From Bugula neritina (lineage: Eukaryota > Animalia > Bryozoa), in NCBI GenBank assembly GCA_964035545.1, contig OZ037765.1, forward strand, positions 7,698,698-7,762,697: a DNA stretch of 64,000 nt, given 5' to 3'. A program made the translations under genes and the position numbers. How positions within the stretch are numbered: position 1 is the stretch's first letter; each line of letters begins with the position of its first letter. Positions 3,501 through 61,443 of the stretch are shown piece after piece. Under the pieces are notes generated by a model, which was given only the letters and a program-made list of their open reading frames with translations, had not been told where the DNA came from and did not search any database.

Positions 3501-5448
3501 TTGCTAGTCAACAAACCTACACCAGAAACTGACTGTTTGCCATACTTTCACAGACACTTGCAGTACATGCCATGTTGCCCAAGATGCCAATAGCGATTTC
3601 CTACAATAGTATGGAGTCAGTGATGAGTAACAAAATATAAAAGTAAATTTTACACTCTGACAGCTAATGTACATTTTATCAACAAAAGTGCACCTTACTG
3701 TAGCAGACAGTGGGATAGTGTATATCTAAACATATACTGTTGCAGGTAAAATATATAATATACAACTATAACAGGAAATCCTGACTTAACCTGCAGGAAA
3801 TTTTATTAAACATTTTGTTTAGTTAAAACACAAGTGTTGTGTAGTATAAACAAATTTAAATGGACCTGTGATAACAGTCAACTGCGTTTTAGAGCCACAA
3901 ACTAGCAGCACCTGCATTCTACAGCTCATGTCATTCAACAAACTGTCATTTCTGATTGCATCAGGCTGTTTAGATCTTGTAGCTTACATTGAATGTAAAT
4001 TTATATGCCGGACTGATATTTAAAATACAATAATAATCAAAATTCCTTGTATTGCACCCAGTACCAAAAGTTGGTAAGTTAGCCAAATTTAGCTATGCAT
4101 TTAAATTTATTTATACACAACACTTGTTTCACTTGTGTCAGAATGTTTAATAAAATTTCCTGCAGGTGAAGTCAAGATTTCCGTTATTTGGGATCTAACT
4201 ATTAGTCTAGACCAGAAGGTTATAAATTTTGGGAACAAATGTATCCTTTTACTGAAATTTGACTCTCACAAACAATATTATAAATATCAAATCTATGAAT
4301 TATAACACTGCAATGGACCAGAAGTGGGAAGACTATTCCAACTATTAATGCTACAAGTTCAGGTCAGACAAGTACCGTGGCTCTAGGAGCATTAGACTTG
4401 GATATAACTTCTATGAGAATGTCTACAGCTTTAAATTCTTGAAGAAGTTTTGCTACATTTTCATCAGAGCTCATATCCCAGAGCTGACACAACTCGTCCT
4501 GCAGAGTATCGCTGATGTTGATGATGTCAGAGTCAGCAGTTGAAATGCTGTCGAGTTGAGCTCCGGCAAGCTGACGGTCTTTAGCAGGTGAGTCTGTAGC
4601 AGTTTCTAAAGCAACAATGAAACAAGGTTTTACTTAGCATAACTTATTAGTCCATATAACACGTTTAAAAGGTCGACATAGTATCCAAAACTATTACTAA
4701 TCAACTATGTATATAAACTGCCAATTATGAAATAAGAGTACCTTTCACGGACTTGCTATCATTCAATTGAGTTGAGCTGCTTTCATCAAGTGAAGATCCT
4801 TTAACACAATCACCCTTAGCGTCTGTATTTGAGACAGACTCTACAACACACATACAGTTATCAACACCACAAAACCTAGTTTAGTATAATTTATATAATT
4901 TATGCATATATTAGTAATAGTCGTTTTGAGTAAAATGTAACAAAAAATAGACAACTTTAAAAACATTTCACATCATATATTGCATTATTTGAATTAAAGC
5001 CGCTTGTTGAAAATAGCAGCAACAAAAAACAAACCTGAGGTAGTGGCAGCACTGTCAACAGGCTGTTCGATCACCTATAACAAAAATAATTTGAATTCAA
5101 CAACTATTACGCATTAAAAAAATAAAATTTAAAGTTTAAACTAAAATGTCTTGCCTTAAGAAGGTTCATTAAAGTACGGAATAGCCAATGTTTACTAAAG
5201 GCTGTTCCGCCAATATTGTCACTCAGGCCGAGAATTTCTCTGGGAGGAGAAGGGTTCCTCACGGGAGCGGGACTTTCACTTCCAAAAGCAATCATTGCAG
5301 GACTGCAGCCACCAGCAATCATTGCAGGACTGCAGCCACCAGCAATCATTGCAGGACTGCAGCTACCTAAAGGCAATGATGCAGAACTTCCTTCACTTGT
5401 GTCTGCACTACTCTTGGTCAGAAACCTCTCAACTTTTGATTCACTCAT
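577..5448 (-). CDS. SAAL1: Protein SAAL1 homolog (multi-exon, probably continues beyond the left edge)
   Basis: Exons approx. 5448-5155, 5074-5035, 4840-4742, 4605-4376, 3600-3521, ~2588-2414, ~1748-1540, ~1367-1203, ~668-577. Translations RNPSPP..DNIGGTAFSKHWLF, ELCQLWDMSSDENVA, EIAIGILGNMAC and DAPTLVEATR match SAAL1 motifs (RNPSPP/IGSTVYSKHWLF/WDMS/EICVGILGNMAC/DPPTLLETSR). Confidence 0.88.
1757..1975. repeat. 19-bp minisatellite (CAGGTATCAGGTGATCATA)n, ~11 copies, SAAL1 intron
   Basis: Directly visible tandem array abutting the acceptor of the ~1748 exon. Confidence 0.95.
2757..2790. repeat. (GT)n microsatellite
   Basis: Visible GT/GC dinucleotide run. Confidence 0.95.
3409..3509. repeat. 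15-bp minisatellite (TATTGCTAGTTATCA)n, ~7 copies
   Basis: Direct tandem copies; explains ORFs 3269..3514 and 3411..3593. Confidence 0.95.
3768..4187. mobile_element. MITE-like element with ~90-bp terminal inverted repeats
   Basis: Left arm GGAAATCCTGACTTAACCTGCAGGAAATTTTATTAAACATT..CAAGTGTTGTGTA..AAATTTAAATG (3768-3862) is the near reverse complement of 4098-4187; no ORF. Confidence 0.8.
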
Positions 5449-5769
5449 CTACATCAATACAATAATTGGGTTGCAAACAAGATGTTATCATTTTCTATTA
5501 TTCTAACTTTGATCATTAATGGTTGGTTGCACAAGCACTTCCATCTACAGCACCAGAAGGGGGCAAACTAATAATATTACTATTACTAATACAAGTAACT
5601 AATACTAAGTAACACAAACTGTAATACTAATAGTAAAAGTCTGTCACTGTCAGTCACTGACTGTGACTCTGACTGAGTCAGTGTGAGTATCTATGGTTAT
5701 TGTTGATGATGGTGTCTGACAATTGACTTAGACCTCAGGCTATCAGCTAAATACTTAATACTAACACTC

Positions 5770-6404
5770 TGTAGCGATTCAACCTATAACAGTTATAACC
5801 CAACACGCTGATATGTTTGGCTTCCCATCTTCATTCTATTGTTACAAGTACATTCTCTGGCTTATGGTTTGAGACAGATTAAAGATTACCTATCACACGA
5901 AACTAACCCAAACTTTCTTATCACAATATCTGTTTATCCACAAACAATTACAATAACAATTACAAAACATTGGAACACTCACTGACATAAACATGGTGCC
6001 CCGAGTGAGGAAGTTATCACACTGAACGCTACCTATACTACAGCTAGTTCCTGATACCTGATACAAGATAAGAAATAGTTATTGTAAACATGGCAACTGC
6101 ACAAGATTTTCTTATGCCCAAACCCCTGCAAGATGGTGCAGAGTTGTCCACCCAATGGTCCCGCTTCAAGGAAGAGTTCGACTATTACCTAATAGCTGCA
6201 GTAAAATCTGACAAAGAGGATAAAATAAAAATAGCCATTCTACTGCGGACCATTGGACCAAGAGGCGTAGACATATTCAAAAGTTTCAAGTTTGGGGAAA
6301 GAGAATCTAAAGATGTTTACAAGGATGTCCTAGGAAAATTTGACAACTTTTGTAAAAAGACCTCCAACAAAATAATCAAAAGACACCATCATCAACAGTT
6401 ATGA
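5770..6404 (+). mobile_element. 5' fragment of a Ty3/Gypsy LTR retrotransposon: putative LTR (5770-5993, TG..CA), PBS (5994-6010), truncated gag
   Basis: TGTAGC...AAACA is followed immediately by TGGTGCCCCGAGTGAGG (complement of a tRNA 3' end), then a gag-like ORF. The LTR left boundary is inferred; no pol or 3' LTR is present. Confidence 0.8.
6090..6404 (+). pseudogene. Truncated retrotransposon gag N-terminus (104 aa)
   Basis: QWSRFKEEFDYYLIA..KIKIAILLRTIGPRGVDIFKSF..YKDVLGKFDNFC is typical of invertebrate Gypsy gag N-termini; it ends abruptly. Confidence 0.75.
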
Positions 6405-8263
6405 CAGTATGAGTATGACTTTACCCGTAGGAGTATACCGTAGGACGTATGCCTATTGATATTGATATCCAATTTCATAGTCTTACAGTAACTGCATTAG
6501 ATTAAATAATTAATATCAATATGTTCACTGATTAGTTAGTTACTACTTGTAGTTGTAAGCTATTACTATTAGACTTACTTTTAGTATTAGTTATTTAGTA
6601 TTAGCTAACCAGTTGAATATACTCATACTGATACTGCATATATTTATATAATAACTGCATCATCATCATGATCAATAAGTATAACATTAACCGAGTTATT
6701 CATATTCATATTGATAATGATATTCATATTCATATTGATGCATTTATTATAATTCAAGCTAATAGTTTAAAGGGAGTGTAACACTGAAAGTAAGTATAAC
6801 ACTGATTCAAACTGTAAGACTAACTCCAAGTGTAAGACTGGGTGTAAGTTTAACTTTAAGACTAAAAGTAACTGTAAGTTCAAGTAAAGATTATAAATAC
6901 TAATTAGTAATTTCATATTTGCTTATTTGGCTGATGCTTTGTAAAATTGGAAAAGCACGTTTAAGGTCAAGGCTAAAAATTTAACCTTAGATCAAAAATT
7001 TGAAAAGCAAAGTAAATTAGCATGTAAATAATATGATTATGATGTCGTTCCTCCCCCAATAGAAACATAAAATGCTGTGGTGCAGCCACTAATTGCATTT
7101 GCAGACTAAATATCACTAGAAGCAGCACCAAGTTGGGGGCGCCTGAGTGCAGCATATTTTGTATAAACCTCGTTGTACAAACTCCAAACTCGAGACTCAA
7201 ACCAATGCACTTAGAGACCATTAACTTCGTGCTGTTTTAAGCAACTCTCCTGCAGGCTTTCAAAGGAGTGGGCTTTAATTTTTCGCAACATATCCTTATG
7301 TTATTAAACTAATAATAATTTAGACTGGTGCTATGATTACAATAAATCACTGTCAAATTTTAAGTAATAAATCTCTTTATTATAATTATTGGTTATTTTA
7401 CAGCGATAATAAATGCAATAGTTATTTGCTTTAAATTAACTTTGACAACTATTGTTAGTGTAACACTAACTGTAACTGTAACTTTTAAGTGTTACTATTA
7501 GTATCACTATTAGTATTATTATTACTCTAAGTCAATAACTATTACTATTAGTATTACTAAACTAAAACTAAAAGTAAATCTAATACTAATACTAATAGTA
7601 GTAATATTATTGTTAACTAATATTAACTATTGCTGTTAGATTTAGTATTATTATTACTATAACTTTCAAGTATCAGTATGAGTATGACTATTGGCAATAT
7701 AATTATTGAATTACTGTTATTGTTAGTAATACTAATAGTATTGGTATTACAGTCACTGTTTTATTTACAGCATATTTTTATTAGTATTATACTATTAATA
7801 TTAATATTTCTGGTTAATATTGCTATTAGTATTAATATAAATCTTAGTAATACTTTAACTTATACTAACAATATTACTATTACTATTACTATTACTGACT
7901 ATAACTATTACTAATGGTAATAGTAGTTATATCTGTTCAGTATTAATATATAAATTAGCATTTTTAAAATTTTTAGCTATCAAGCACTTTATAAATCATT
8001 GAAGAGCTTAAAATATGTGTATAAGAAACATAAATTTGATGTTATAAGAAAGTGAATGTATAATTTGAATGCATTGTGCAATGTCAAGTGATTTTTGTAA
8101 TTTTTTGTTTGCTGTATTGTAAAATGTCTTTTTGCAGTTTGCGATACGTTGTGCTGCTTAGAATTAGATAGTCTTATGCTTTTAAATGGCAGAAAATTCT
8201 TAAAAAGTGTTTTCATTTGTATTTTGTAGATGGTTGGATGATGGTGCTAAAAATTTGTTAAGC

Positions 8264-11200: not shown

Positions 11201-13954
11201 TGAACAATTTTAAACAATGAAAAATATATTTTTTATCCTGAAGTTCCCAATAGTTTTAATAAAAATGCCAGCCAAAAATGTGTTATGCAGATATATCATT
11301 TTATCTATTTTGCATTAATTTTAGATACAGTATTGTGATTAATCATATATATAATAGCCAAATAGGGAGTGTTTGTTTCTGAATTTGTCATTATATTTTC
11401 AATTCTAATTGTTGTATTGCACTTACATTGTCATATGTTTTATGCATTTGAAATTGATGCGATTCAGTAGATATAAACATTTTTATGGAATAATTTTCGT
11501 TGTTCTACGTTCATCTTTTCAGCTGTGATTTTTTTGGCACTTGTGAGTTTACTATAGCCAAACCTTTTTAAAGTCTTGTAATATTGAGCAAGAGTTTTGG
11601 GTAGGAAAAGTCACTTTTCTTAACAGCTTGGTAACTCATATGCTTAGATGCTGTTAGTTTGCTTCATGTGCATTTCCACAATTTTAAAGCTAATTGCAAA
11701 AAACAAGTCATCTTATTGAATGATATTCTCTGCTTCTACCACAGTAGATAGAATATACTAGATCTCAGAATTGAAAGCATCTTCTAAGTATTGACTATAT
11801 ACTGACTAGATACTGACTACTGACTATATACTGACTATGTACTGACTAGATACTGACTATATACTGACTATGTACTGACTAGGTACTGACTAGATACTGA
11901 CTAGATACTGACTATATACTGGCTATGTACTGACTATATACTGTGACTATGTACTGACTATATACTGACTAGGTACTGACTAGATACTGACTATATACTG
12001 GCTATGTACTGACTATATACTGTGACTATGTACTGACTATATACTGGCTAGGTACTGACTACATACTGACTATGTACTGACTATATACTGACTAGATACT
12101 GACTATGTACTGACTAGGTACTGACTATATACTGACTAGATACTGACTATAGACTGACTAGGTACTGACTATATACTGACTATGTACTGACTAGATACTG
12201 ACTATATACTGACTAGGTACTGACTAGATACTGACTATGTACTGACTAGGTACTGACTATATACTGACTAGATACTGACTATAGACTGACTAGGTGCTGA
12301 CTAGGTACTGACTATATACTGACTATGTACTGACTAGATACTGACTATATATTGACTATATACTGACTAGGTATTGACTATATACTGAATAGATACTGAC
12401 TATAGACTGACTAGGTGCTGACTAGGTACTGACTATATACTGACTAGGTACTGACTTGGTACTGACTATATACTGACTAGGTCATGTACACAAGTTGATG
12501 AAGCTGTGAAGTATATTTTTAATATGGCTATTTCTAGCAACTTGATCAGAATGAAGTACTCAATAATTTTTTGACGTATCTCAGCAGCTGGATATTCTTA
12601 ATTCTTTATCTCTGCTGCCAGGAGCATGTTACTTCAGCATTGTATATTCAGCTAATATTATTTCTACTACTACTACTACTACTACTACTGTTGCTACTAC
12701 TACTACTACTGCTACTACTACTGCTACTGCTATTATTACTGCTACTACTACTGCTGCTGCTGCTGCTACTAGTACTACTGCTACTACTACTGCTGCTGCT
12801 GCTACTAGTACTACTGCTACTGCTGCTGCTGCTGCTACTAATACTACTGCTACTGCTGCTGCTACCACTACTACTCTTGCTACTTTTACCACTGCTACTA
12901 CTACTTCTATTACTACCTCTATTACTACTACTACTGCTACTTCTACTGCTACTGCTACTGCTACTATTACTGCAATTTTCTATTGTTATTTCTGCACTAT
13001 TACTATACTTGGTATAATACATTCAATCTCTCATTACTCGGTGTTTCTGTTTTACACAAATTATGATAAAACTCACACTCACAAAGGGAGCATGTGTGCA
13101 TATTTTTTAACTTACAAATTAATATATATTGTATTTGCCTTGCTATACATTCATAGTTAGCGAGATGTACTTTATATACCCTTCATAGCTATCTGGTAAG
13201 CCTATGTTTTATTATTGTTAGATTATAATATATTTTCATATTCATTAACCACCCAGCACTTGTGTAGGTGTTTATGTAGAATGCATCAAGCATTCCAGTA
13301 TGCCTCTCATGATTTTTCTCTTTCACATCTTGCTTGTCGACAATAAAACACGCTTTTTGCTCTCTTAGTTCACTGCTGTGTGATTGACATTTCTAAGTGA
13401 TTGTGATTCAAGTATAAATACTTCAGAGTTGCATCATAAATTAAAGTTTATGTAAAAGGAGTAGACATACATTTTTCAGACTTCTAGTTTTAAGGTGTTC
13501 CATGTTAAGATTGCCTAGCACTGAGCAATTTTAATAGCTAATCCATTTAATGTAGAGTGTTCTGCACAATAAAATACACAAAACCAACTATTTTCAATAG
13601 ACACATGGTGGTTCTGTACTCTGTGATATCTAGGTCTAAACTTTACAATAGTAACTATTAGAGTGGAGGTTGAGCAAGTCTTGTGGTATCTAGTAAAGCT
13701 GAAAATTGAGTTGAATGTGAAAATTGAGGAACTAAAAGCCTGATGATGAAGTTAAACTAAGTTCATAAAAACAAATGCTATCATAAAATATTTTATGTTG
13801 TGATTGCAGCCTGCTATGGTTAGAAGTTGATTCAAGCCACCCTGATCAAATCAAGAATTTAGTAGAAAATAACTTAGACTGGGGTCTTCAGTACATACAG
13901 ACATACAATGACTTTCTTGGCAAGCCCCGATTCTGTTTGCTTTCACTTCAATAA
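8264..13954 (+). CDS. HEMK1: HemK/PrmC-family release factor glutamine N5-methyltransferase (mitochondrial type)
   Basis: Exons approx. 8264-8566, 9103-9185, 9401-9494, 9701-~9944, ~10250-10346, 10778-10877, 13810-13954. Motifs [32 protein letters not shown] (SAM motif I), [29 protein letters not shown]; N-terminal extension compatible with a transit peptide. Confidence 0.93.
11790..12481. repeat. 11-bp variant minisatellite TACTGACTA[TA/GA/TG/GG], ~60 copies, HEMK1 last intron
   Basis: Near-invariant 9-mer plus a variable dinucleotide, directly visible. Confidence 0.95.
12664..12972. repeat. Mixed (CTA/CTG)n trinucleotide repeat
   Basis: Visible run; explains the poly-L, poly-S and poly-V/A ORFs. 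Confidence 0.95.
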
Positions 13955-14806: not shown

Positions 14807-17800
14807 ATGGATTCGATAAAGAAAGCTATGCTTGCTATGAAGAATGACAAAGATGCTGCTACAGATCGAGCAGAAACACTTGAAAATGATCTTGTAGAGA
14901 AAAAAGAAGAAAAAGAAAAGGTACGTTAAAAGCACCATACTAAAGCTGATTGAAATAAGTGTGAAAAAGAAAATATTTTAAAGCTTGATGTGATACTTAA
15001 TTTGATTATAGCAACTACACAAGCAAGCTGGTAAATCTTGTGAAATAAAATAATAAATGCCTATAAATTTGAAAATTATTGGCGAATGAAAATAGGTCAT
15101 AATTTTGCACTCTTGGTAATGTCCTCGCACACTCCAGCTATTGTTTTTAAGGTTATTGAATTTTTTTAAACTCAGCTTTGTTATAGAATTTTGAAATGAG
15201 GCTTCTAGTTTGTTTTGATAAGAATACAAAACTATTTTGCATCTGCATATATTTTATTATTTAAAAGTATAAAATTATATAAACTACAGTTTAACCAGAA
15301 ACGACTCTTTCATCTAATTGTATAGACTAGCCATCAGCGGCTGTCAAAGAAATACTATTTTTCTGAATTTAAATGAAAAACAATTTATGAAGCATTAGTT
15401 AGATAGAAGAACTGAATTTGTTTATGTTTTTATGTTTAAAACATTTATAGATTGAGGAAGAAAGAGATGCCCTATTGAAGAGAATCAACCAGCTTGAGGC
15501 AGACACTACCACTGCCAAGTCCAGCTTCGAAGAGTGCACAAAGAACTTAGAAGAATGGAATGTACAGAAAGAAAAGGTTTGCAGAAGCATATCAATAATA
15601 TATACTTGCATGGGAAAAAAACATAATAATACACTTGTTGCTATGCTCCTTCCTGTGAAGGAAAAATCTTTTGAAAATTTAAAAACTATATGTATGCTTA
15701 TAGTGGATTAATCTGAGGAATAGTAGCCTACAAATCATTAAATAGTATTCCACTGTTGCCTATAACTGCGGGTGTGTATAAATACCTCGTAAGTGCCATC
15801 GTAATATTTCACCAACAGTTTAAATCTATCTTAAATCTATGTTTTGTTGCAGTACGAACTAATTTACATGTAGCTGCTTTGGAAATATAAAGATATGTTA
15901 ACAGACAATTATTGTGCAAATAAAAGCACATTTGAAAAAGATAACCACTGCAACTACTAAAAAGTAATTGAGATTACACAATAATAATAATTCAACTTCT
16001 GCAGTGACTGATGCCTCTATTATTATAATAAAAATACTATAAAATTATTCATAAAATTGAACATAAATCAACATAATTAACATAACCAACACACCTAGCA
16101 AAATGCAGCATTAGTTTATTCTACCTAGTACAAATAATCAGTTGGAGAGACCAATTAGTAGGCTGAAGATACATGCAATTCATATGATAATAATCTCATC
16201 TGCTTATACACCTTATAGCTTGTGCTGTCTCTACAACTGTTGAATGTAATAAAATACTCATCACCTTGAGTAACTGCACTCATCTGCAATCTTATTATAA
16301 AGGTAAACACATGCAAAAGGGACATAAAATAAACATTGAATTGAAATTTCAACTTATTTTTTTAATTAAATTGACACCTATTTATAATATTTAGTAGCAT
16401 AAAATAGCCTTCTTGAGTATTTCATTTGAGTCATAGCTCCCTAGTATATCTGATGGTCCGGGTTTTAGAGAAAGATTCAAAAAATTTTTGGCACAAATTA
16501 TTCTGTTCTGTGAAGTATTTTTTGAGACAAAACCCTAATCAAAAGTCAAAAGTATTGTTTTAATAGAATCCAAAGAATTATTATGATAATTGGACTGGTT
16601 TAGGCTTTACTGAGACTATTTCTCAAATCAAAATCAACATTTGTTTTATAAAACCCAGCTGAGAAATAGTACAACTAGTTAAAAAACTAGGTAAAATTGA
16701 TGCATAGACAAAATATATTTCTGAAATCACATTATAGGGAAAACATCTTTGCTTGGCTAATATTATAGTCTGACAATTTACTTTTTGTAGCACTATATAA
16801 ACTATGAATGTAAGTTTTTTTTTCCTTTGCATTCTTTTCCAATAAAAATTTAAATTGAGCTGCTAAAAAGTAACCATGTTTTGGTTACTATTACTTGAGG
16901 ATTTTATTACATTGGTTACTAAAGAAATGGGTTTGTGAAATTACATGGGAGTAAATAACTCCAAACTTATTAAGCATCGAATGCTTTCTTATAGAAAAAG
17001 ATAACTCCGTATTTAAGTACTATTAAACCGAAAGTGAAAATAAGCTATGCGTAGTAACTTTTATAGTCTATTTAAATTGCAATTAAAAAATTATATATTT
17101 TGTAGCATTTTAATTATAAAACAAATAATACAATTTTTTGTATATGTTTAAATTACTATTGTATTCTAACTAATATATAATACAAAGTTTAAGCTAATTT
17201 TAAAGCATTATTTATAGCGGAGCAATATATTATAGTAATTGGTCGGTTATGTGGAAGATGGCTTTTCCGGGTGTTGAAAGCTTCAGCTTGCAAGTTTCGG
17301 TACCGGCTTGACTGACCTACTAGAAGTTCTTCTGTTTTTTTACCTTTGTCAACCAAATAATTTGCAATGGCTGATCGAGGTCTTGTACTTGCAAGCGTGA
17401 AAAATCGCATGCAAGCTCTGAGAGATGAGTTGGATGTGGTAAAAGATAATTATGATCTAAAGTGTAGAGAATGTGAAGCATTGATTGAAGAGAAAAATCA
17501 GGTCTGTGAAAATCAAAATAGAAATGTTTTGCCATGCATAGACATTTTATATATTATTGTTCTTTCTGTTGGATTTTGTTTTGTGTTAATTCAATATGGT
17601 GTGCTGGTTTTTTATTGCTTCAGTTTTGCTTTCAGTTTCTTACTGTTTTGATTTTCAATTTGAATTTCAACGAATCCAATAGTTATAGTTATACTCGTAA
17701 CTCATACTCATACTCGTACAGTCAATTTCAAATTCACCATTCATTCATTGAATAAAATTAGAAATAAGAATGAGAATGAAAAGAATAAAAGAATCGGACC

Positions 17801-20800
17801 TTAGTCACACTCAGTTAGTCTGAATATCATATTAAACCAGTAAGATTCAGACTGACCACTAAGACTGATGAGTGATACTCGTGTTGGTGTGGGTAGTCTT
17901 TGCAGTTGAGTTGAAGACTAAGTCAAAATGAGAATGGATTTTTTTTATTGAGGTTGGCGCGGTTCTATTATTTTTTGACCTAGAATGAATAACATTAGCT
18001 CAGTAAGTGTAGTGTAGTACTAACAACTACTCTTAACTTTTAGCAGAAGACAATTGTGCAGTATAATTTATTTCCAAGATTGCTCTTCACTACAGTTGCA
18101 TATAATGAGTAACAAAAAGTAAGCCTAACCATTTATTGTTTAATTATATTCATCACTATTGATATTAACTATTTTTACAATTCGTTTGACTTTTAAATAT
18201 TTGCATAAATATTATAAATATATAAGACTATACAGAAAGTTGGTATTGTATTTAACTTTGCTGACTACTTATTATAGTCTTACTGTCTTCTCTTATTGTG
18301 AGCTGCTAGTCAGTGAGTAATTGCTATAAAGTAAACTGCTGAAATTGTAGCATAGTGTGAATACTGGTGATCAGCAAATTTAATTATTTAATAATTTCGT
18401 TTAAAAAATATGATAATTGATTGCAATGATGAGTACATTATAAAGAAATTTTTACCTACACACACACCATTATATGCCAGTTTACACTTAAATGGGTTAT
18501 GAAGTTAGTGGGGTTTAAAAAAGTAAGCTAGCCACCATCACAGGCTTTAGTTTGTCAAATTTATACAGCCACAAAATTATTTGATTAAAATTAATTTAAA
18601 TTTTAATAATATATTTAGCCTTAAATGAGTAACTAAATCAGTAAATAAGGAGATTTACAATCTAACAATCATAGTTGGTGTTAGAGTTAGACAAGGTATC
18701 TATGGTAATTTCAAAAAGTCTGGTAACTAAATTTTATGTTTGACATTAGCTTCAACACTCTTGACATTACCCAATTTTGTCACACTAGCATTTATATTTT
18801 ATTTTTAAAATGTAGTCTGTGCTCTTTGTGTATCTGAAATACTTCAAGAGAAGTTGCATATGGACATTTTAATAATACAGATTTTTTATTTAAAGATATT
18901 TTTAAAAATAATGATCAGCCAGAGGTTTTTGATTTGCAAGATGATCTGGTGGTTCTGATGCCTTAAAATCGCGAATATTATGGAAAAAATAACACATGTT
19001 AGGCTATATTTGATCTAAATGGCATACTGGTTTTTATTAGCAATACCCATAAAATTATCAAAAAACAGTCCAAATAGAAACCATCATTTGGCAGCCTCAA
19101 ACCAGTTAGAATTGACTGAATCCATAGCAACTGGTGTTGTTGACCTACTGGGACTGGGTAATTGCTGGAAGTCTACTTATATCTCTATGCCAGGTCATAT
19201 TGAATTGGTTTTCAAAGTTTTAATTTAGGAATCTACTAACTGAATTGTTAAAGTAAGTATATTTTTAGTTAGGAACTCAACATTGTTTTGATTTCCATTT
19301 GATGTTTTACAGAAACAACTGGATGAGTTTATAGAACTCCACTAATAATGAGTTACAATGAAAGTATGGTTGCATAGTGGGACAAAAATTCATAAAAGTT
19401 CATGAAATGTGTAATAATGGAATCACTTTTCTGAAATATATCTAAGGAATTGTTTCATTAAAAGACAATAGACAAACCATCAATGCCAATTTAGATCATT
19501 AAACAATGTACTCAGTATAGAATGAGGGTCAGAACTCTAAAAAAATATTCTTAAGTTCAGTTCAGTTCGACTCAATTTGACAACTGCAGTTGGTAAAGGC
19601 CATGCTATGTTTCATTGAATAGTATGATGAGGAGGTGGCAAGTCTCAATAGAAAACTTCAAATGGTAGAGGAGAAGCTGGAGACTACAGAGGAGCGTCTG
19701 GAGCAAGCTAATTCAAAATTTGAAGAGGCATCCCACCAGGCTGATGAGAGTGAGAGGTGAGCATCAAACTAGTAGTATTAGTTAGTAGGTGAACTAGTCA
19801 GGCAGGATTTCATACGAGAAGGAGGGGGGTAATACCAATGAAACTAATATTTTTATTGGGTGTGTGTATATAGTCTGCTGGTAGAGTGAATTAATTTGTG
19901 AATGACTAGAGCTTACAGTGGTTGCAGTCAGTAATCATTGTAGTCTAGAATGTGGTTTAATAATCGTGCCATTGTAAACTGGTGTCTGACCTAGTTGTTT
20001 TTGCTAGTAAAAAACAACTAGGTTGTTGTTTCACCATAGTTTACTCAAACACTTGTGGCAGTTAGCGGAGAACATCCTGATGAACAAGTGAACTAGCAGT
20101 TTATGTGGGCCGTGTGATCTTTAGATAACCTCAACTGTAACACAGCCATAACATGCCATACAACTACAGTGGAGTTGATCATAAAATTCAAAGCACTATC
20201 AGTGATACTTTACCCTGTATTGTTTCTATGATAATAAATTAAACGAAGCTTGCATCTGGTAATAAGACCTCACTACTAGCTTGTGTTTTATCTTGCCATT
20301 ACCCCTCAGTACCGCTTGGAAAGTTATGCTTGACTGAAGCACTGCTTAAGTCAATATATTTTATCAACGGAGTGAAGCTTATGCATGCATTTACCTCAAA
20401 CCCCAATAAGTATGTTACAAAAAGTGCATAGATTGAGCCCCATCTGTCAATATTTTTTACATGGATTCTGCCTCCACTTGTTTTCATGTGTCATTTGACG
20501 TATCTATGACACACTCATCAACTGCTACTGACCCACATACCAGTGTATATGACAGCCTGCAAACTGTTTCCTAGTTTTTCATGTCCCGCATTCAATTCAT
20601 ATAGATGTTGAATATGCTTGAGTGAACCCTGTTTATCACTTTTTGTGTGTCTGCATGCATAGAGCAAGAAAAGTATTAGAGAACCGTAACATGGGTGTTG
20701 AGGAGCAGTTGTCGACAAATGAGGCGCAACTTCGAGCAATAAAAGAGTCTGCTGAAGAGAGAGATAAGATGTATGAAGAGGTAAATGGTTGGACTTAGCA

Positions 20801-28198: not shown

Positions 28199-30231
28199 AT
28201 GGTAGGCACGTTTTTCTTTTTCTTCTTATGCTTATATTTAAAACTACTAGCAATATATTTAAGAAACTTTGTACCTTATTAACACGCTTTTAAACTTGAG
28301 ACACAATATTTTTTATTAGTTTTTGTTACACCAATTTGGTACTGAATAACCAATTATTATAAAATAAACTCGTATTTATTTTCGATTTCATGAGATGTAA
28401 ACTTAGACTTGGAGTTAGTCCATGGTCATGTTGATGTTCTTCAGTGAAAACCTGCTAAAATTGATTTTTAATCTTTGTCTTGTCTGTAGCTAAAGATACT
28501 TGTAAATTTACCAAGCCGTTGGCATTTATGGTACTATAAGTAAGCCAAGTAAAATTTGTACTAAGTCTAATGTGTATAACTATGATTAAGTATGGTGTCG
28601 TGTCGGTGTACTTCTAGTTATACCAATCAAATTGTATTTGTAGTACTAGTAGCAGTTCAAAGTCAATAAGCTTGACACCAATTGCGGTGGAAAAATTAAA
28701 GATTGGAATTCCGCATTTTTTCAGATTCGCATTTAAATTTGCCAATATTAAAAGTTGCAAAACTTATTTTATGAATTGCATTTATTTTTAATTTCTTACA
28801 GTACCATTAGTATTACCAATACTAATAAATGTTAAATATAATAATCTATATGGGTACTAATAGTATTTAGATGAGTTATACTAATAATAGTAAATAGTAA
28901 TAGATTTAGTATTCAGATTACTCCGACTGACTCTTGTTATATTGATCTATATTTTTTAACCTTATATGGTATATACTACTATCATAATAATTATTTTATT
29001 ACTGTAAAACTTCTACTCCATATATTTTTAGCCGCCAAAGAAGGCAGGTAAAGATAGTAAAACTCCTAGTAAGGCGCCGGCCAAGAAGAAAGAAGGGTCT
29101 GGTGGTAAAGCTAAGAAGAAGGTATCTAACATTTGCAATTAAATTAAATCAGTAGAAAAGTCTTGGTAGCTGTACTACAAGTAGGCATGAAAATTTTTTT
29201 AATTAGTTTAATATATTCACGTTCATCATTCTCGAAACCAATTAACCTTGTTAAATACTTACTTGAAAATCTTAATAAAGGCTGATAAAATATTTTAGAA
29301 AATTGCTTGGCATAGTTGCAATTTAAATGCTTGAAGACTTGATTCAAGTTACTTATTGCTTCAAACACAAACTGATGCTATGCTGTGAGTTGAAATATCT
29401 TGTGATAAATATCATTGCTGAAGAAATTATTTGCAGAAGTGGTCAAAAGGAAAAGTAAGAGACAAGTTGAACAATTTGGTTTTGTTTGACAAAGCTACAT
29501 ATGATAAATTGCTGAAGGAAGTACCAGCTTACAAGTTGATTACCCCATCAGTTGTTTCTGAAAGACTAAAAGTTAGAGGTAGCTTGGCTAGAGCAGCTCT
29601 CGCTGATCTTCATTCTAAAGGTAAATTGTTTTGATTGTAAATATTTTTGAACGTGTAATATAAATTGGTGTAATTACCAACGTAAAGATTAAAAATAATG
29701 ATTATTTGCTTCCAGGTTCAAATACTCAACAGAAATTTCAATAATATGCTTAGGTATTGAGTTGTATAAGTATACAGTAAGTTGATAGTATAGAGTTGTG
29801 AAAAGCTGAATTACTTGCTGGTATTAGCTTTAATTAGTAGAAACAATAGTAATATTTATAATTGTAATGTGAAAAACCATTGTATGGGTGTAACTTTTTT
29901 TCCTCTTTTTTAAGCTGTAATGGAGAAGTTGGTTTATGAGTTTGGTGTACCAGGTTGTGCTTTTAATATAACATCACAGTTCCACAAAAAAAGTTTCCTA
30001 CCTCTGGGAATGTGGATATAATATGATGAAAACTTCACTGACCTGTTCATACAACACAATGGTGATAGTTTGTCTGAATCCATAATCTGCTAGTGTTTAC
30101 TGCAACAAAATTATTTATTCTTTTTGTGTACAGCTTAGGTTTGTGTTGCAGGATTGATAAAGTTGGTGAGCAAACACAGAGCACAGATTATATACACCAG
30201 AATTACTAAAGGTGAAGATGAAGCCGAGTAG
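28199..30231 (+). CDS. RPS25: 40S ribosomal protein S25 (eS25)
   Basis: ATG|GT at 28199-28201, exons 29032-29121, 29437-29620, 30152-30231: [53 protein letters not shown]. Confidence 0.97.
30011..30083 (+). ncRNA. Intronic box C/D snoRNA, SNORD25(U25)/snR56-like
   Basis: Terminal stem TGTGGAT/ATCCATA, C box ATGATGA 30023-30029, C'-like ATGGTGA, D box CTGA 30074-30077, guide TCACTGACCTGT (11/12 to the 18S ACAGGUCUGUGA site); ends ~70 nt upstream of the 3' splice site of a ribosomal protein intron. Confidence 0.72.
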
Positions 30232-34332: not shown

Positions 34333-34391
<59 letters not shown>

Positions 34392-42542: not shown

Positions 42543-44409
42543 CTTCAGCGGTCAGCTATGAACAATATTTATAGCAAAAGTATGTGACAGGTTCCCTTAG
42601 TAAACCCATACATGTATAGGCTGCCACCTGTAACATGTCAACAGCACTAGCTTCAGTCTGCACATAAAAATTGTCTTATAGGCAATGAGTAAATTACTAC
42701 ATGTTTGACAGAACTCATCCATATGTATACATTTAATCTAATTAGTCAGTTGTATGGTAGGCAGCTATGAAATGTATTTAAACATGGAAAATCAATAAAA
42801 TGTATTAAGGTCAATGTGAAAGCAATATCCAAAACATCATAAGGTGTAGCATCTGGGATACCAGAATATAATCTGGCCAGAAACCATGAGCTATGAATAA
42901 TTGGTTTATAAAAGATGAAAACCTGGACAAATATTCTAAAACTTGAAGACCCTGCAACTATCAACATCAAACAACTAAAGTATTTTGTAATAATTATGAC
43001 ATTAATGTTGCTGCTACCGTGTGTCATTATTTTTTTGTACATATTAGAATTTTCAAAATAAAAAAAGGAATAATGATTTATAATTTTGATATAATATTGT
43101 TGTCTCAACAACCAATTTGAGCATGAACAATTATTCGCCAACAGATTAAGTTGCATATGTGTTGCAGAGTTTGTCCTATAATGTATACACTATGTTGTAT
43201 AATATGCATTATTAACCAGTTCCAGTTCACCATATCATGTCATCCGTGGTTATTGATTGCTAAAGTACTATTATTTGATGAATGTGCAACCACTGTAACT
43301 TTGTCTGACTTTCAATTACATGCAAAATCTATAAATATAATATTGAGGAAACAGCTAGATATATTAATTTTTGCCACCTTCTAGGCATCACAATAATGCA
43401 GGTAGTCAGCCTCTGTGCGAATTGCAGTTCTATTCTTAATTTCTCATAAAAAGTAAAAAAACAAGCTGATTTTAAAAAGCATTTTGGCAGGTAAATGTAA
43501 CTAATACCAGTCAACTACACGTCACAGTGATACTTACTCAGAAAGAAAAAAATTATTTACAAAACTTTCTCATTAATAACTTTATATAGTTAGCCTATTT
43601 ATTTATGTAAACTTTATATGAATTGCTTATTGTCCTAGCTTGAAAGTTTCAGTGTCATTACATTTTTGATTTACTACTTTTCTACATAGCATGTAAAAGA
43701 TTGGGAATTATTTGATACCTATGTTGGTCATATAGATATAGAAAATTCGCCTAAAACTTCTAATAACATGTTATAGTTAAATGATGATACAGGGTCAATG
43801 TTCATTTGTAGACGATAGAGTTATCTTCTCTATCCAATTACAGTCTAGGACTCTAGGAGGAGGAGAGTTATAGTTATAGCAGGTTCTTACAGAGCCTTTA
43901 CCAGAGATTATAAATTTCAAGTATTTATAAATAATCGCATTAGGTGTTTTAATGCTATTGGAAATGTGAGGGTGCCCAACAATGCAGTGTAGAAGGAAAG
44001 AAACAATTTTAATCTCACTAGTAAACTTGTTCTGTAGCAACATTAATAGTTGCCAAACATTATAGAAGACCATGTACAAATGCAGTTTATAGGGCTAGCA
44101 TGTGGCTAACAACAATGAATAATGAGTGATACTTTTTATACACTTATCTAATAATTATATTAATTGAAGAATTTATAGTGTGGCCAGTGATCTCAACAAT
44201 ACATGTTGTTATAATGACTAATAGTAATATCTCTTATCTGATGGTATATCACAACAGTAAATTAATTTCAAGAGAATGACTGGAAGAATTAAGATAATTG
44301 TCACTCATAACTGTTTTTATGACAATATGAATTACAAGCAATAGTTTTTAACGTTTTAATTATTAAACAGGTTGTTTAATTCTAAATTTTGGTGTTTATA
44401 ATCATTTTA

Positions 44410-44530
44410 GGTGCTGTGACGTCAAAGTGTTAAAGGGCATATATCGCGCTGTGGTGAAGGTCAAAGTTAAAATAATCAGTAATGACCTAGCGTAGTGTTG
44501 AAGTTTTGTGTTGCAGTATGCGGTACGATC
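44410..44530 (+). promoter_or_regulatory. Probable FDXR promoter / 5' UTR exon with palindromic CRE (TGACGTCA at ~44417)
   Basis: Local CpG-containing patch with candidate donors, upstream of the acceptor at ~45455 that precedes the ATG; inferred. Confidence 0.4.
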
Positions 44531-45480
44531 CCTAAGTTAAAACGCATTAGGAATTATTATGGTGCTAATTTTATATTCTAATTTTATTCTAGTAGTACTA
44601 GTACTTAGAGTTAGAGTTAGTAACAGTATTACTTATAATTATATTTATCATTTAATTTTATGGTTATTCTAAATTTCTTATATCTAAAGTTAGTCTTATA
44701 CTTGGTATTACCGTTATTCACTCATGCAATTATACTTATGCTTTTACTTTTAGTGTAACAATGATATTTTTGTTGGAGTTGACAAATTAAGGTTGTAAAA
44801 GAGTAAAGACTAAGTCAAAATCTATTGAATCTAAACTTTATTCATTATTGGCTACCTTTAGCTAGGGTTACTGCAGTATAATGATAATAAATGTGAATAT
44901 AAATTTGAGTATTGTGATTTAATGCAATAGCTTAACGTGAATAGATAATACCGAAACTACTAGTAGAGTAGTACTTGGCAGAGCTGGGTCATAGTCAAAT
45001 TTACTTGAGTAATTGCCGATTCAAATTTCTTCACTTAAGCTAAACTCGACTTGCTAAAACCATTGACTTTGAGTTTTTACTTGACTGACTTTTAAAAACT
45101 TGCAGGTGAATTTAAGTCATATAGGAACAGTTCGTTAAGTATGTCATGTAAAGTTTGTAATTTAAGTCAACATGCTTGTGTAAAATGTTTTTAAAGTATT
45201 TGAATCCAAGTCTATAAACTAATAGTATTAGTTTTAGCTTTATTTTTATTTCAATAGCATTATCTTTTTTTTATTATAACTATTTTAGGACTATTGCATC
45301 TTTTCATGAATTGTGATAAATATTATGTGAAAAAGGTTTTTGATTAGTTCGTACTAAATGTTTTTAAAATTATTATTGCAGAATGATAAATATGTGTTGG
45401 GGGAAAAATGTTCAACTAAATTAAACAACTGGTTAATTTATCACTTTTATTTTAGTATTTGCTCTATTATAACACTCACG

Positions 45481-48400
45481 ATGTCTAGGAGGATATTTCA
45501 GCACATTTTCGAAAAGTATAACCGTGCCTATCAACATAGGAACTGTTCTCGGAAAAGAAATGCTAAACAATTGAAGTCTTGCATTGTTGGCGGTGGACCA
45601 GCAGGCTTTTATACTGCTCAAAGGTTACTCAGAGTATGTTCTATGTTTCTCATATAGTTAATTGTGTATTGGTAATAAAACTCTGCTAGAAATATTTCGA
45701 TTACATAGTATTTAATAGTTCTAATCGTTGGGATATTGTAGAGAAATTCAGAGATTTTGGTGGATATTTTTGACAAACTTCCTGTTCCTTTTGGTCTTGT
45801 CAGGTTTGGAGTGGCTCCTGACCATCCTGAAGTCAAGGTAATAGTTTATTACATGATGTTTTGCTCTGGTTAGTGTGGATTGTGTTCAATGACATAATTT
45901 TAACTTGATCAAACACTCACTTCCACTAAACTTTGTTTTGAGACCACATATGATAGAGCTACTTTTAATTTTTTTTTACATTTTGGAGTTGAAACTGTAA
46001 AATAATTGAAATGCATTGTTAAGGAATTGGCTTACTGTTGCCTGATCCATAATTTTTTCCAAGTATGCTTAGAGTCAAAACAACAACTGCTGCCTAATAC
46101 TGCTTTTTTACTATATAACTGACTCATCAATATTAGCTTGATATAGCTCCCAAATCTCTTTATTGAGTATTAAATTCAGCAACGTACATTTAACATTAAC
46201 ACTGTATGCTATAATGAGTGCATATTTTAGACAGAAATACTTACTGCATTGATTAATAAAAATTTCAATTCTAAACAGTTTTCTTGTAACTAGAAAGGCA
46301 AAATCTATATATTTTTTACAACTCTTATTTCTTATTACTAAATTTTTTTTATGTGAAAACTGGCCGACTAAATATTGCATACAAACTGCACAGATTCCTA
46401 GTCTTTCTACTTATATGAAATATTTCTAATGTAACTGAAAAGTTTGTTGGTTTTATATTTCAATATATTTATTTGTTTTGCTGTTGTGAGGTTGGTTTTA
46501 TTTAAATAGCACATTAAAAGTTTGCAAAGTTATTGTGAGTATAAAAATTGGGTTATATTTCTGCAAAAAATTGTAGTAGTTAATTTTTAGGGTTGTTAAA
46601 TTAAAATTGGACAAGCATATAATACATATAAATACATAAATGATGTAATTATATTTTAGGCTAGCTTTTTCAACATTTGTCAACATGACTGTAATAAAGA
46701 GGAGTAAATTAAAAGAATTATTAAAGTATAAACTATTTTAATTTGTAGAATGTCATCAATACTTTTACTCAAACAGCTAACAAGTATTCTGATAGATGCC
46801 GATTTCTAGGAAATGTAGAAGTTGGTAAAGACATCGCCATATCTCAACTACTTGAATCATATGACATTGTTGTATTTGTAAGTTACAGTGCTAGTCTTAT
46901 TTTTCACAACATATTACGCATGTAATTTTTGTGAATGTGTTTTTTAAAGGTTGTGAAATAATCGTCTCTTGTACAAAATGACTCTGTTTCCCATTACTCA
47001 CCTTTGCAGAAACACATTACACTGGTTCTAATTTTAAAAAGTTGTACTGTTACTTTTTTCTTATAGAGCCATGGCGCTGAAAGTGACAGAAAGTTAAACA
47101 TCCCTGGGGAGGTAAGTAGATTTTCTACTGGAATACCGGTTTCTGTCTAAACCCTTGGGTATATGTAGTTTGTTCAATGCACATGACCAGGTTTTTATTT
47201 TTTGCAGAATTCAGATGGTGTTTATTCAGCTCGAGAATTTGTTGGATGGTATAATGGTCTTCCTGAATTCTCCCATGTAAGAATTGCACATTTTCTTGTA
47301 ACTTTTATATATGTCTGCTTGTATGTCAGCTTTAGTAATAGTGTATTTAGGTACCTGTGTAACTACTTAGTCAATTTATAATAAATTTGAGCTTGTATCG
47401 AGCTATGACATTTATAAACCATTACAAATTGTCAATATTGTGATCTTTATGTAGCTGGCACCAGATCTGAGCAGGGAGTCTGCTATTATACTTGGACATG
47501 GTAATGTTGCTCTGGACATAGCAAGACTACTTCTAATGCCAGTTGATGAACTTGCTGTGAGTTACTGATGTCAAACTATGCATGCCCTTTGAATTAGCTT
47601 CTCAAATATATTTTATGGCTTTTACTAGTTTGCTGAATTGTAATAGTAATGCAGTTTGCCCTGTTTGAAACATTGCGCTATACCTTCATTCATGTATGTA
47701 TGTATGTGTATATGCATATGTGTGTGTGTGTGTACGTGTATGGATGTGTGTACATGTGTGTGGAAGTATAGGTGCGTGTATACTGTGTTTATCACTAAAA
47801 AGAGCTTGATATAAAAAACAAAGCATATAATGTTACGATAAAACAAAACATTTGAATAAATAAAATGTAACATTATATTATAGGCTTCCATTACATAAAA
47901 CATTTGTATTTTGGTAAAAAAGAGTTATCCAATAACATTGTTCCTTTTATTTATTGAAACTTTCATGGTTTCAAGAATTCCGTGTACGTTATTTTGCAGA
48001 AGACAGATATCTGCCAACATGCGTTAGACGTTGTGGCAGCTAGTAAGGTTCAACATGTTCACATTGTTGGTCGAAGAGGACCTCTTCAAACTGCCTTCAC
48101 CATCAAAGAATTCAGAGAGATGACAAAACTACCTAACGTTAAATCACACATTTGTTTAGAGGATTCGAAAACATCAATAATGGAAGAATATGAACGTGTG
48201 TTGAGTTTTTGTGTATTATTTAGTAGACGGTTAATTTTTATATAAAATGTTGAAAACATAATAACTTATATTTCAATTTACACTGTGCAGAAAGTTTACA
48301 TTCTGATTTTATTTATTTGCCGCAGTTTGAAATATCTAAACCTTTTCAATATATAGGTTTGGCCAGACCTCGTCGTAGGATAACTGATCTCATGCTGAAA

Positions 48401-61338: not shown

Positions 61339-61443
61339 GTCAATCTTCCTAACAAATAAAAAGCTTTAGTTTAATAGAACATATAAATGATAAACATTCA
61401 GTATACATACTTTTCACAATGACTATTAAATTTAGTTATTTAA

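Follow-up and report, generated by a model that had tools for sequence, protein, structure and literature searches.

A close described counterpart of the DNA reported here is found in C. elegans, whose PATCs form an abundant periodic non-coding texture, rather than a motif, that is tied to a gene class (PMC4947018; bioRxiv 10.64898/2026.08.08.743475). They reportedly arose when minisatellites of germline-active genes underwent mutation coupled to transcription (bioRxiv 10.64898/2026.08.08.743475), and their host is an animal with spliced-leader trans-splicing. A second likeness is to the outrons of trans-spliced genes in nematodes, tunicates and chaetognaths, 5′ RNA segments that are discarded at an acceptor immediately ahead of the start codon; chaetognath genes that undergo trans-splicing show broad expression and germline enrichment (PMC12460157). 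Promoter-proximal short tandem repeats are also enriched near gene starts and change rapidly by whole units (10.1101/2025.09.14.676153, PMC9990875). Interrupted minisatellite-like arrays share with the DNA described below the gain or loss of several units at once (18, 24, 30 bases), and their interruptions may stabilise them. Cryptic simplicity denotes scrambled mixtures of related repeat units, which the Bugula neritina tracts likewise are. Our literature searches found no paper describing a genome-wide hexamer-lattice class and no periodic DNA class described for outrons; trans-splicing in Bryozoa is not reported in print.

The sequence analysed was the 216-Mb Bugula neritina assembly, and the window, that is, the whole stretch examined, comprised 64 kb of its contig OZ037765.1. 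The features discussed are given below with their lag-6 identity (the identity between bases six positions apart), followed in brackets by the interval measured where this differs.

5446-5450, minus strand: SAAL1 start codon (5448-5446) with the acceptor AG (5450-5449) directly before it, from the sequence
5570-5700, no strand assigned: distal piece of the hexamer tract on the SAAL1 side, lag-6 identity 0.50 (5570-5765)
5701-6407, plus strand: 707-base insertion of a multi-copy repeat, absent from the sibling-lineage contigs L003 and L004
6408-6920, no strand assigned: proximal piece of the hexamer tract on the SAAL1 side, lag-6 identity 0.47 (6405-6920)
6921-7449, no strand assigned: unique ordinary core, presumed divergent promoter of SAAL1 and HEMK1, lag-6 identity 0.31 (6950-7430), 8 CpG
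7450-7950, no strand assigned: hexamer tract on the HEMK1 side, a strict (A-N-T)n lattice, lag-6 identity 0.61, lag-3 identity 0.45
8229-8233, plus strand: HEMK1 acceptor AG (8229-8230) with the ATG at 8231 directly after it, from the sequence
17601-17930, no strand assigned: weak hexamer tract about 100 bases past the tropomyosin alternative first exon 1b, lag-6 identity 0.45 (17650-17930)
28801-29010, no strand assigned: weak tract with periods of 3 and 6 in the 3′-terminal part of RPS25 intron 1, lag-6 identity 0.43, lag-3 identity 0.41
44521-44970, no strand assigned: hexamer tract after a CpG-containing core on the 5′ side of FDXR, from the sequence, lag-6 identity 0.44 (44580-44970)
61901-62365, no strand assigned: hexamer tract on the 5′ side of INTS2 (minus strand), about 550 bases from its acceptor and ATG (61338), lag-6 identity 0.53 (61915-62365)
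62476-62660, no strand assigned: hexamer tract of opposite A/T polarity with TATTAC units, from the sequence and the lattice and periodicity scans
63085-63420, no strand assigned: weak hexamer tract following the CpG-rich core (62850-63060) that belongs to the next gene on the plus strand, lag-6 identity 0.45

Lag-6 identity lay between 0.43 and 0.61 in every tract named by a preliminary description of this DNA, compared with 0.30 window-wide. Lags 4, 5, 7, 8, 10 and 11 were generally at background; at lags 10 and 11 identity was ~0.19-0.33 in most tracts, and a lag-10 value of 0.40 was seen solely in the short interval 5570-5765. The enrichment at lag 6 held for all four bases, same-base neighbours were depleted, AA and TT being scarcer, and each tract contained 0-5 CpG. 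Nine control introns and intergenic stretches were flat, without periodicity. A lag-6 excess above 0.2 was found in 3.0% of 120-base scanning windows, and no such window passed this value in ten third-order Markov simulations (maximum 0.18). An independent scan of the window recovered the tract sites of the preliminary description and agreed with it that the internal introns and the GPCR, LRR-Ig and tropomyosin 1a starts in the 64-kb window carry no tract. Periodicity was also confirmed in the further tracts, although it was weak at 17650-17930, 28800-29010 and 63085-63420. Otherwise the scan matched only two classical satellites, one of (CTA)n (12664-12971) and one of (TA)n (34336-34389). TRF resolved the tracts into arrays of period 6, 12 and 18, with 2.5-21 copies and 65-100% matches, and perfect hexamer arrays of at least two copies numbered 355 in 264 kb. 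Hexamer families were numerous among the tracts: the strict A-N-T lattice was limited, in the window, to 7441-7965 and 62191-62640, and the other tracts consisted of other families. An Rfam search of the window found no family. The proposed association with housekeeping genes was drawn from about nine genes of the window.

At the SAAL1/HEMK1 locus the tracts do flank an ordinary, unique core: its lag-6 identity was at background, and a BLAST search with 6921-7449 against 200 kb of other loci gave no match. The core was 87.5% identical to L003, with conserved blocks, and was partly covered by RNA contigs. The claim that both genes have an acceptor just before the ATG was borne out by the AG at 5449-5450 for SAAL1 and at 8229-8230 for HEMK1, and the exons following the HEMK1 start match a methyltransferase domain. 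The SAAL1-side tract begins ~120 bases from the acceptor. Its supposed segment 5701-5765 proved instead to be the start of the 707-base insertion, which splits one older tract; in L003 and L004, 5570-5700 continues straight into 6408-6920. The insertion carries a 104-aa gag-like ORF (6090-6404), matched no Pfam family above threshold, and had a contig depth 10-60x that of unique sequence in two DNA runs. TATTCA, GTAAGA and TATTAG are among the units of 6408-6920. In 7450-7950 there is a single strong base (S) per 6 bases, and A-N-T occupancy reached 0.70, compared with a null maximum of 0.40.

The other tracts of the window are likewise confined to gene 5′ ends. In tropomyosin, the exon 1b ORF spans 17361-17500. 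RPS25 was identified by PF03297 matches, all protein searches being run on single exons, and its exon 2 opens at 29033 without an ATG, so that the start codon lies upstream. The FDXR tract lies ~500 bases ahead of the acceptor and ATG (45481); the nearby core at 44400-44540 contains CpG and TGACGTCA, and no tract was seen on the LRR-gene side. The acceptor lies 31 bases ahead of the ATG in FDXR and 10 bases ahead in INTS2, which was identified by PF14750. The 62476-62660 tract is separated from 61901-62365 by a short unique stretch.

The preliminary description's recurrent sequence class adjoining gene 5′ ends is real, and it extends genome-wide. The strict 24-base lattice (A-S-T-A-W-T)x4 occurred 11,438 and 11,373 times on the two strands of the assembly, compared with a chance expectation of ~0.01 per strand and with 812 and 843 occurrences of a mirror-image control. 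Of 20 Ras-family genes, 13 had a tract in the 3 kb upstream of the first coding exon and 2 had one in the 3 kb downstream (p = 0.0008). The class is not a decayed transposon family: tract-to-tract matches had a median of 70 bases and 76% identity and fell equally on both strands. Window tracts matched 10 of 20 unrelated loci in short, multi-register matches on both strands, without common ends; the matches of L003 to the tract of the window likewise ran both ways and in many registers. A decayed transposon or satellite family, or an assembly artefact, is therefore almost certainly not the explanation, even with a genuine repeat inserted at 5701-6407 and a very high contig depth over 7452-7648, since that depth is due to short look-alike lattice words and the tract also occurs, besides the long-read assembly, in a further two DNA runs and in two independent metagenome contigs.

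The tracts had been assigned to first (5′ UTR) introns. At RPS25 intron 1 and tropomyosin exon 1b it follows from the sequence that the tracts are intronic; at SAAL1 and HEMK1, no join to an upstream exon was seen in the RNA contigs among the matches listed. SAAL1 contigs from two runs stop at the acceptor, at 5450, and HEMK1 contigs begin at 8228 and 8256, with exon joins 8566>9399 and 9492>9699 observed. The furthest-reaching contig of each gene carries about 21 unaligned letters (21 in SAAL1) that, judged by orientation, adjoin the acceptor. The tracts at SAAL1, HEMK1 and INTS2 may be located in outrons rather than introns. In SAAL1, HEMK1, INTS2 and FDXR alike, they sit between promoter core and first acceptor. 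In 14 of 17 nearest-upstream tracts, T exceeded A on the sense strand, which is the pattern expected of transcribed DNA.

A sibling-lineage contig, 6-7% diverged in flanks and introns, keeps the tracts at the same place, with an identity of 0.80-0.885 compared with 0.936 in the flanks. Against L003, 6408-6920 was 80% identical, with indels of 24, 16, 14, 8, 6, 6, 5, 4 and 1 bases, and 7450-7950 was 88.5% identical, with insertions of 6, 6, 15 and 30 bases. In these comparisons of short-read contigs, the lineages differed by whole units, the longer indels including multiples of 6 (6, 6, 6, 6, 24, 30), and also by other lengths (1-5, 8, 14, 15 and 16 bases). L003 and L004 are near-identical, with 0 differences over 634 flanking sites; within 6408-6920 four indels (18, 18, 6 and 20 bases) separated them, and at the tract edge a 42-base deletion. 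Some of the indels could be assembly errors, since both contigs are short-read assemblies. No tract stretch was conserved above the neutral level between the two lineages. In the strict lattice, the middle N differed at 17.9%, the A/T frame positions at 4.4% and introns at 7.3%; this pattern of N and frame would follow from unit turnover, and the frame positions were, if anything, slower than introns, not significantly (p = 0.17). The excess at N, together with apparent C<>G changes, could partly reflect units aligned out of register.

Beyond these lineages, the RPS25 route to the transcription start and to other species was dropped, its matches being too conserved, and the two long animal contigs that it yielded contained no tracts. 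A relative's SAAL1 showed no tract in the 390 bases at hand and the same acceptor just before the ATG. The INTS2 contigs extend only 162 bases upstream, and a metagenome scan with FDXR exon 1 returned bacterial flavoproteins only.

Neighbouring units follow an unusual rule at their C/G letter. The A/T letter persists along arrays, with 74% of 4-unit arrays coherent and A/T positions the same between neighbouring units in 70.8%. The C/G letter is anti-persistent: (ACTAWT)x4 and its complement made up 3.2% of lattice 24-mers, compared with 12.5% expected. S followed S at lag 6 at 1.87x expectation, and the base was identical in just 55.7% of such pairs; when the spacer was identical, S was flipped in 61-67% of neighbouring units. 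After ACT and an identical spacer, the next unit was AGT in 76 cases, ACT in 40, AAT in 12 and ATT in fewer than 6, which is not a point-mutation spectrum. Anti-persistence was restricted to the contexts A_T and T_A, where 505 letters were flipped and 483 the same, compared with 31 and 118 in T_T and A_A (p = 1e-12). Neighbouring copies, as expected from slippage, were alike beyond chance at A/T positions, but not at C/G. TACTA and TAGTA are one duplex read from opposite strands.

Several simple sources of the flips were considered. If whole hexamers were copied either way, the middle A/T should flip with S; among S-flip cases it was the same in 32 and flipped in 6, and this model was rejected. 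Correction through extended hairpins or quasi-palindromes was not supported, the flip rate being independent of spacer symmetry (0.54 and 0.52). Dyad 4-unit patterns accounted for 29 of 100 arrays in a hand tally of the first 100 rows listed, compared with 25% expected, and single-strand folding was only modestly beyond shuffles (tracts, z = -3.2; core, z = -2.2). A strong rise in C<>G point mutation is not favoured, few such changes being seen: confidently aligned blocks contained 3 in tracts and 3 outside, and N sites showed 3 in 84 compared with 2 in 1,501 intron sites, changes that out-of-register units could mimic. AID-like hypermutation, for which TACT fits WRCY, is a resemblance only, and S persists at such sites, which speaks against it.

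The explanation that we prefer, and to which we give roughly an even chance, is that the tracts are a local case of a genome-wide class, hexamer-phased and hypermutable DNA within the 5′ segment of genes that is transcribed and then discarded. Hypermutable, A/T-rich, low-complexity DNA would fill the first intron, or the outron if the gene is trans-spliced, on both sides of unique cores. No specific sequence would be retained; the tracts would be remade as blocks of 6 bases, or of multiples of 6, are gained and lost locally at very high frequency, plausibly during germline transcription, when the DNA is single-stranded. Texture and promoter-adjoining position would thereby persist while letters turn over at or above the neutral rate, and any function would reside in the texture rather than in a motif. 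In its lattice form, (A-S-T)(N-N-N), a second, strand-symmetric step would have to be added to unit turnover, because the lone C:G pair of a unit is not copied with its unit. Candidates for this step are a C<>G change that depends on context, a micro-inversion at either T-A-S-T-A or A-T-S-A-T, and selection that keeps a strong pair there in either direction. We favour a mutational process over the other mechanisms put forward in the preliminary description, a role as chromatin texture being less probable. Several observations run against the preferred explanation: plain slippage copies whole units, yet S is anti-persistent; the next-unit counts after ACT are not those of point mutation; frame positions are, if anything, slower than introns; and a lattice so uniform over thousands of loci could mean constraint.

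A selected texture, in which selection keeps the lattice because it gives the first kilobase behind active promoters some physical or chromatin property, is distinctly less probable. The relevant features would be TA steps every 3 bases, one strong pair per 6 and the lack of homopolymer runs; candidate properties include nucleosome organisation, easy melting or supercoil absorption, an anti-silencing barrier and an array on which a protein blind to strand (dyad-symmetric or minor-groove) could land, with unit turnover merely renewing the texture. Consistent with such selection, the strong/weak pattern shows much stronger periodicity than base identity does, S stays S while its direction is free, frame positions differ less than introns, and position and length are retained in two lineages while letters change. 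There is also precedent in PATCs as sequence-encoded mechanical insulators of germline genes. Selection for texture is harder to reconcile with polymorphic lengths, the lack of any stretch conserved above neutral, a 6-base period that mismatches the helical repeat and the many hexamer families; moreover, neutrality of S predicts 50% flips, not the observed excess nor a four-fold deficit of same-S runs.

A broader and similarly tentative reading is that the lattice is the trace or target of a strand-symmetric machine at active promoters of a trans-splicing animal. Such a machine could take the form of a dimeric nuclease or recombinase cutting with a 6-base stagger, or of a chromatin factor reading T-A-S-T-A every 6 bases without regard to strand. 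If true, this reading would imply a previously unknown promoter-side DNA code or a mutational process that writes gene starts into the DNA.

Scars of fixed-stagger breaks form an improbable alternative. Here an enzyme such as a transposase, a domesticated nuclease or a topoisomerase-like dimer, acting at open promoters, would cut TA-rich, dyad-symmetric sites with a 6-base stagger; fill-in and rejoining would duplicate the 6 bases between the nicks, and end processing would complement the central base. This accounts more naturally than slippage for a register that holds at 6 while the unit changes. The complement change occurs only with complementary neighbours and independently of wider symmetry; one between-lineage insertion has an extra TAATAG beside TAATAC. 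Several cut-and-paste transposons prefer promoters, and hairpin-end repair yields complement changes adjoining the break. Against such breaks, young indels are mostly 18-42 bases rather than single 6-base steps, no candidate enzyme or element was found, about a hundred events would be needed per promoter at thousands of promoters, and such breaks do not predict an A/T letter that is coherent along arrays.

We consider very improbable an element acting in the pre-mRNA, within the outron or first intron, as a trans-splicing mark, by holding splicing factors or by hastening decay of the discarded piece. Its appeal lies in the position of the tracts between promoter core and first acceptor, in the weak T-over-A polarity and in units that resemble branch-point (CTAAT) and 5′ splice-site-like (GTAAG, GTATG) words; a report on fission yeast describes tandem RNA hexamers that recruit a decay factor (PMC3352096). 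Against it, C equals G on the sense strand, unit directions are equal (39 and 47 BLAST matches), the direction of S is near random, ATT-type and AAT-type units are nearly even (29 and 25), and the GTAAG-rich run at 6780-6880 is antisense to SAAL1.

Whichever reading holds, the C/G rule is hard to fit to standard models of repeat evolution, and it is directly testable with existing bryozoan long-read population data. If the tracts are by-products, as we prefer, they would be a strong and easily readable record of a germline, promoter-linked mutational process, its signature being 6-base steps and complement changes confined to self-complementary triplets, and would provide a gene-start marker from sequence only for a phylum in which functional genomics is almost absent. 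If selection maintains the texture, the tracts would join the 10-bp PATCs of nematodes as the second case of gene regulation through the mechanics of non-coding DNA, with a period and a rule unlike those of PATCs.

Compared with the systems introduced above, the Bugula tracts stand apart in several respects. PATCs have a 10-bp period of A/T clusters, with curvature, are spread through introns of genes in repressed domains and have a demonstrated function, whereas the Bugula tracts have period 6 (and 3), no A/T runs and one strong pair per unit, are confined to ~0.2-1 kb beside the promoter core and are at background at lag 10 in most cases. In minisatellite-like arrays, interruptions are a mutation-like mixture; in the Bugula tracts nearly all of them are C<>G at a single position of the lattice. 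An ordinary repeat grows by amplification of a single unit, which may have any length, and adjacent copies agree at all bases. In contrast, the Bugula tracts keep a register of 6 for hundreds of bases as their unit drifts, and the C/G letters of neighbours are anti-correlated, solely in A_T and T_A.

Lag-6 identity was 0.43-0.61 in all of the tracts listed by the preliminary description, compared with 0.30 for the window and 0.31 for the core (6921-7449) between SAAL1 and HEMK1, which had rightly been called ordinary. Within the tracts period 6 was present for all four bases, same-base neighbours were depleted and CpG was rare; nine control stretches were flat, with no period-6 signal. The lag-6 threshold was passed by 3.0% of 120-base windows and reached in 0 of 10 Markov-3 simulations. 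A whole-window scan recovered the places first described together with two ordinary satellites, and it returned no internal intron, in agreement with the claim that such introns lack tracts. The strict (A-N-T)n lattice was restricted to 7441-7965 and 62191-62640, and other tracts use other hexamers. CpGs were present in 44400-44540 and 62850-63060, the cores ahead of two tracts, the tracts themselves being CpG-free; factor-like words in cores were TGACGTCA at 44418-44425 and a CCAAT-like word near 62940.

The SAAL1/HEMK1 locus contains the following features:

5446-5450, minus strand: SAAL1 ATG (5448) with an AG acceptor immediately before it
8229-8233, plus strand: HEMK1 ATG (8231) with an AG acceptor immediately before it
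5701-6407: multi-copy repeat with a gag-like 104-aa ORF at 6090-6404, an insertion that interrupts the hexamer tract and is confined to this haplotype

From the SAAL1 ATG to the HEMK1 ATG, left to right, the order is 120 bases, tract, the unique core, tract and 280 bases. The repeat matched no Pfam family and is missing from two sibling-lineage contigs, L003 and L004; therefore, both left tract pieces were once a single tract. Protein searches were run exon by exon, with no spliced models built, on C1:7,698,698-7,762,697 of an assembly of 216,009,554 bases (the published Bugula neritina genome has nine large pieces; PMC11480708). HEMK-type methyltransferase, LRR and Ig exons were checked in the window, and PF03297 and PF14750 backed the RPS25 and INTS2 labels, respectively. 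No Pfam family matched the exons of SAAL1, a name taken from the preliminary description. Exon 1 of this gene carries an in-frame 27-base repeat in three copies (5287-5367, GGCSPAMIA), with gap differences among RNA contigs and the sibling lineage (protein of 110 aa vs 113 aa).

RNA contigs from two runs covered the SAAL1 and HEMK1 exons and started at the acceptors, whose position directly before each ATG had been correctly described. Some RNA covered the core and none covered HEMK1 intron 1, so the runs were free of DNA contamination there. In these contigs we saw no upstream exon joined to either acceptor; in two of them, about 21 non-aligning letters adjoin the acceptor. Four window genes have an acceptor 0-31 bases ahead of the ATG, as in INTS2 (10 bases; 61339-61349) and FDXR (31 bases; 45445-45483), and a SAAL1 relative from another species has one 2 bases before it (L005:400-408). 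Acceptors near the ATG and the unaligned letters fit spliced-leader trans-splicing in B. neritina, a process for which we found no report from Bryozoa in the literature; with trans-splicing, the stretches ahead of these acceptors would be outrons. The RPS25 and tropomyosin exon 1b tracts are intronic from plain sequence logic.

Alignment to L003, from a JGI metagenome of the animal, spanned the whole intergenic region, and identity was 0.936 for the flanks, 0.875 for the core and 0.80-0.885 for the tracts. Indels inside the tracts included lengths of 6, 6, 6, 6, 24 and 30 bases, and at 6611-6760 a stretch was swapped for other hexamers. Under a strict filter, differences amounted to 7.3% in SAAL1 introns, 4.4% at the A and T that frame the lattice and 17.9% at the middle N, the last figure being qualified by register shifts inside the lattice, which can mimic substitutions at N. 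L004, from a second sample of the same lineage as L003, was identical to it at 634/634 flanking sites and differed within the tract by indels of 18, 18, 6 and 20 bases and, where the tract ends, by a deletion of 42 bases. Flank identity and tract indels therefore indicate that the tract keeps its place while turning over by unit blocks, and among the contigs compared, which are short-read assemblies, this turnover is much faster than point change.

Within 21 kb of tracts, S (C or G) was paired with S at lag 6 at 1.87x expectation, and the base was the same in 55.7% of S-S pairs vs 70.8% of A/T pairs. Genome-wide, 74% of lattice 24-mers kept a single A/T letter throughout (expected 12.5%), only 3.2% kept a single S letter, and 9.6% alternated as CGCG (expected 6.25%). 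Changes between C and G in neighbouring units (flips) depended on context (p = 1e-12), with 505 flips vs 483 same in A_T and T_A (61.5% and 67% flips with an identical spacer) and 31 vs 118 in T_T and A_A. After ACT and an identical spacer, the next unit was AGT 76 times, ACT 40, AAT 12 and ATT fewer than 6. The flip was independent of the A/T letter and needed no wider symmetry. Three models each failed one of these tests of the C/G rule: slippage of whole units, inversion of whole units, and correction through long hairpins.

The 24-base pattern (ASTAWT)x4 (W, A or T) had 11,438 forward and 11,373 reverse occurrences across the genome, chance being about 0.01 per strand; the matches listed come from about 24 distinct loci within the first 1.6 Mb. 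Its mirror image (TWATSA)x4, taken as a control, was still far above chance (812 and 843 occurrences), and T-S-A sites showed the same C/G flipping as A-S-T, so that the two patterns seem to be sister lattices. Beyond the window we compared 200 kb from the 5' regions of 20 Ras-family genes, in which the core found no match. In 17/20 genes a tract preceded the first coding exon by at most 7 kb, and within 3 kb a tract was upstream in 13/20 and downstream in 2/20 (p = 0.0008); in 14 of the 17 genes the sense strand of the nearest upstream tract was T-rich. At two Ras loci, about -5000 (L011) and -6000 (L014) from the exon, AAT-type arrays stand left and ATT-type arrays right of a short gap, a polarity switch suggestive of additional divergent promoters whose tracts mirror each other, as at 62191-62640. 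Small contigs of the assembly carry Ras and E2 ubiquitin-conjugating genes without introns (e.g. C101:8283-8765, C110:12100-12576, C66:235133-235612, C213:12095-12505, C95:23182-23592), which match along their full length but are rich in in-frame TAA and TAG codons and have hardly any TGA. Such unplaced contigs appear to come from a ciliate that reads TAA/TAG as an amino acid and was assembled together with the bryozoan.

The leading reading, to which we give an even chance, is that the tracts are hypermutable hexamer-phased DNA lying in a transcribed, discarded 5' segment; blocks of units would be gained and lost, renewing the tract, and a further strand-symmetric step would act at S. A possible but less favoured reading, by analogy with nematode PATCs (the An/Tn clusters of Caenorhabditis elegans, 10-bp period), is that they may be a selected physical texture. 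Scars left by a fixed 6-base staggered break are an unlikely source, and an RNA-level role, weakened by the near-perfect strand symmetry of the tracts, is somewhat less likely again. That the tracts are a repeat family or an artefact is scarcely credible; tract-to-tract matches are short, 76% identical and on both strands, on which ground a transposon family was rejected, and the view that no single decayed transposon family aligns to them was upheld. Literature searches on the 6-base periodicity, bryozoan first-intron repeats and outron hexamer repeats yielded no relevant paper, consistent with a sequence class without prior description. Tropomyosin exon 1a has two arrays upstream of it, a 62-copy 11-base satellite (11792-12479) and a 300-base (CTA)n array (12664-12971). 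The latter is a pure A-C-T lattice in which C never changes strand, so that it lacks C/G flipping, and this ordinary microsatellite behaviour contrasts with that of the C/G-flipping hexamer tracts.
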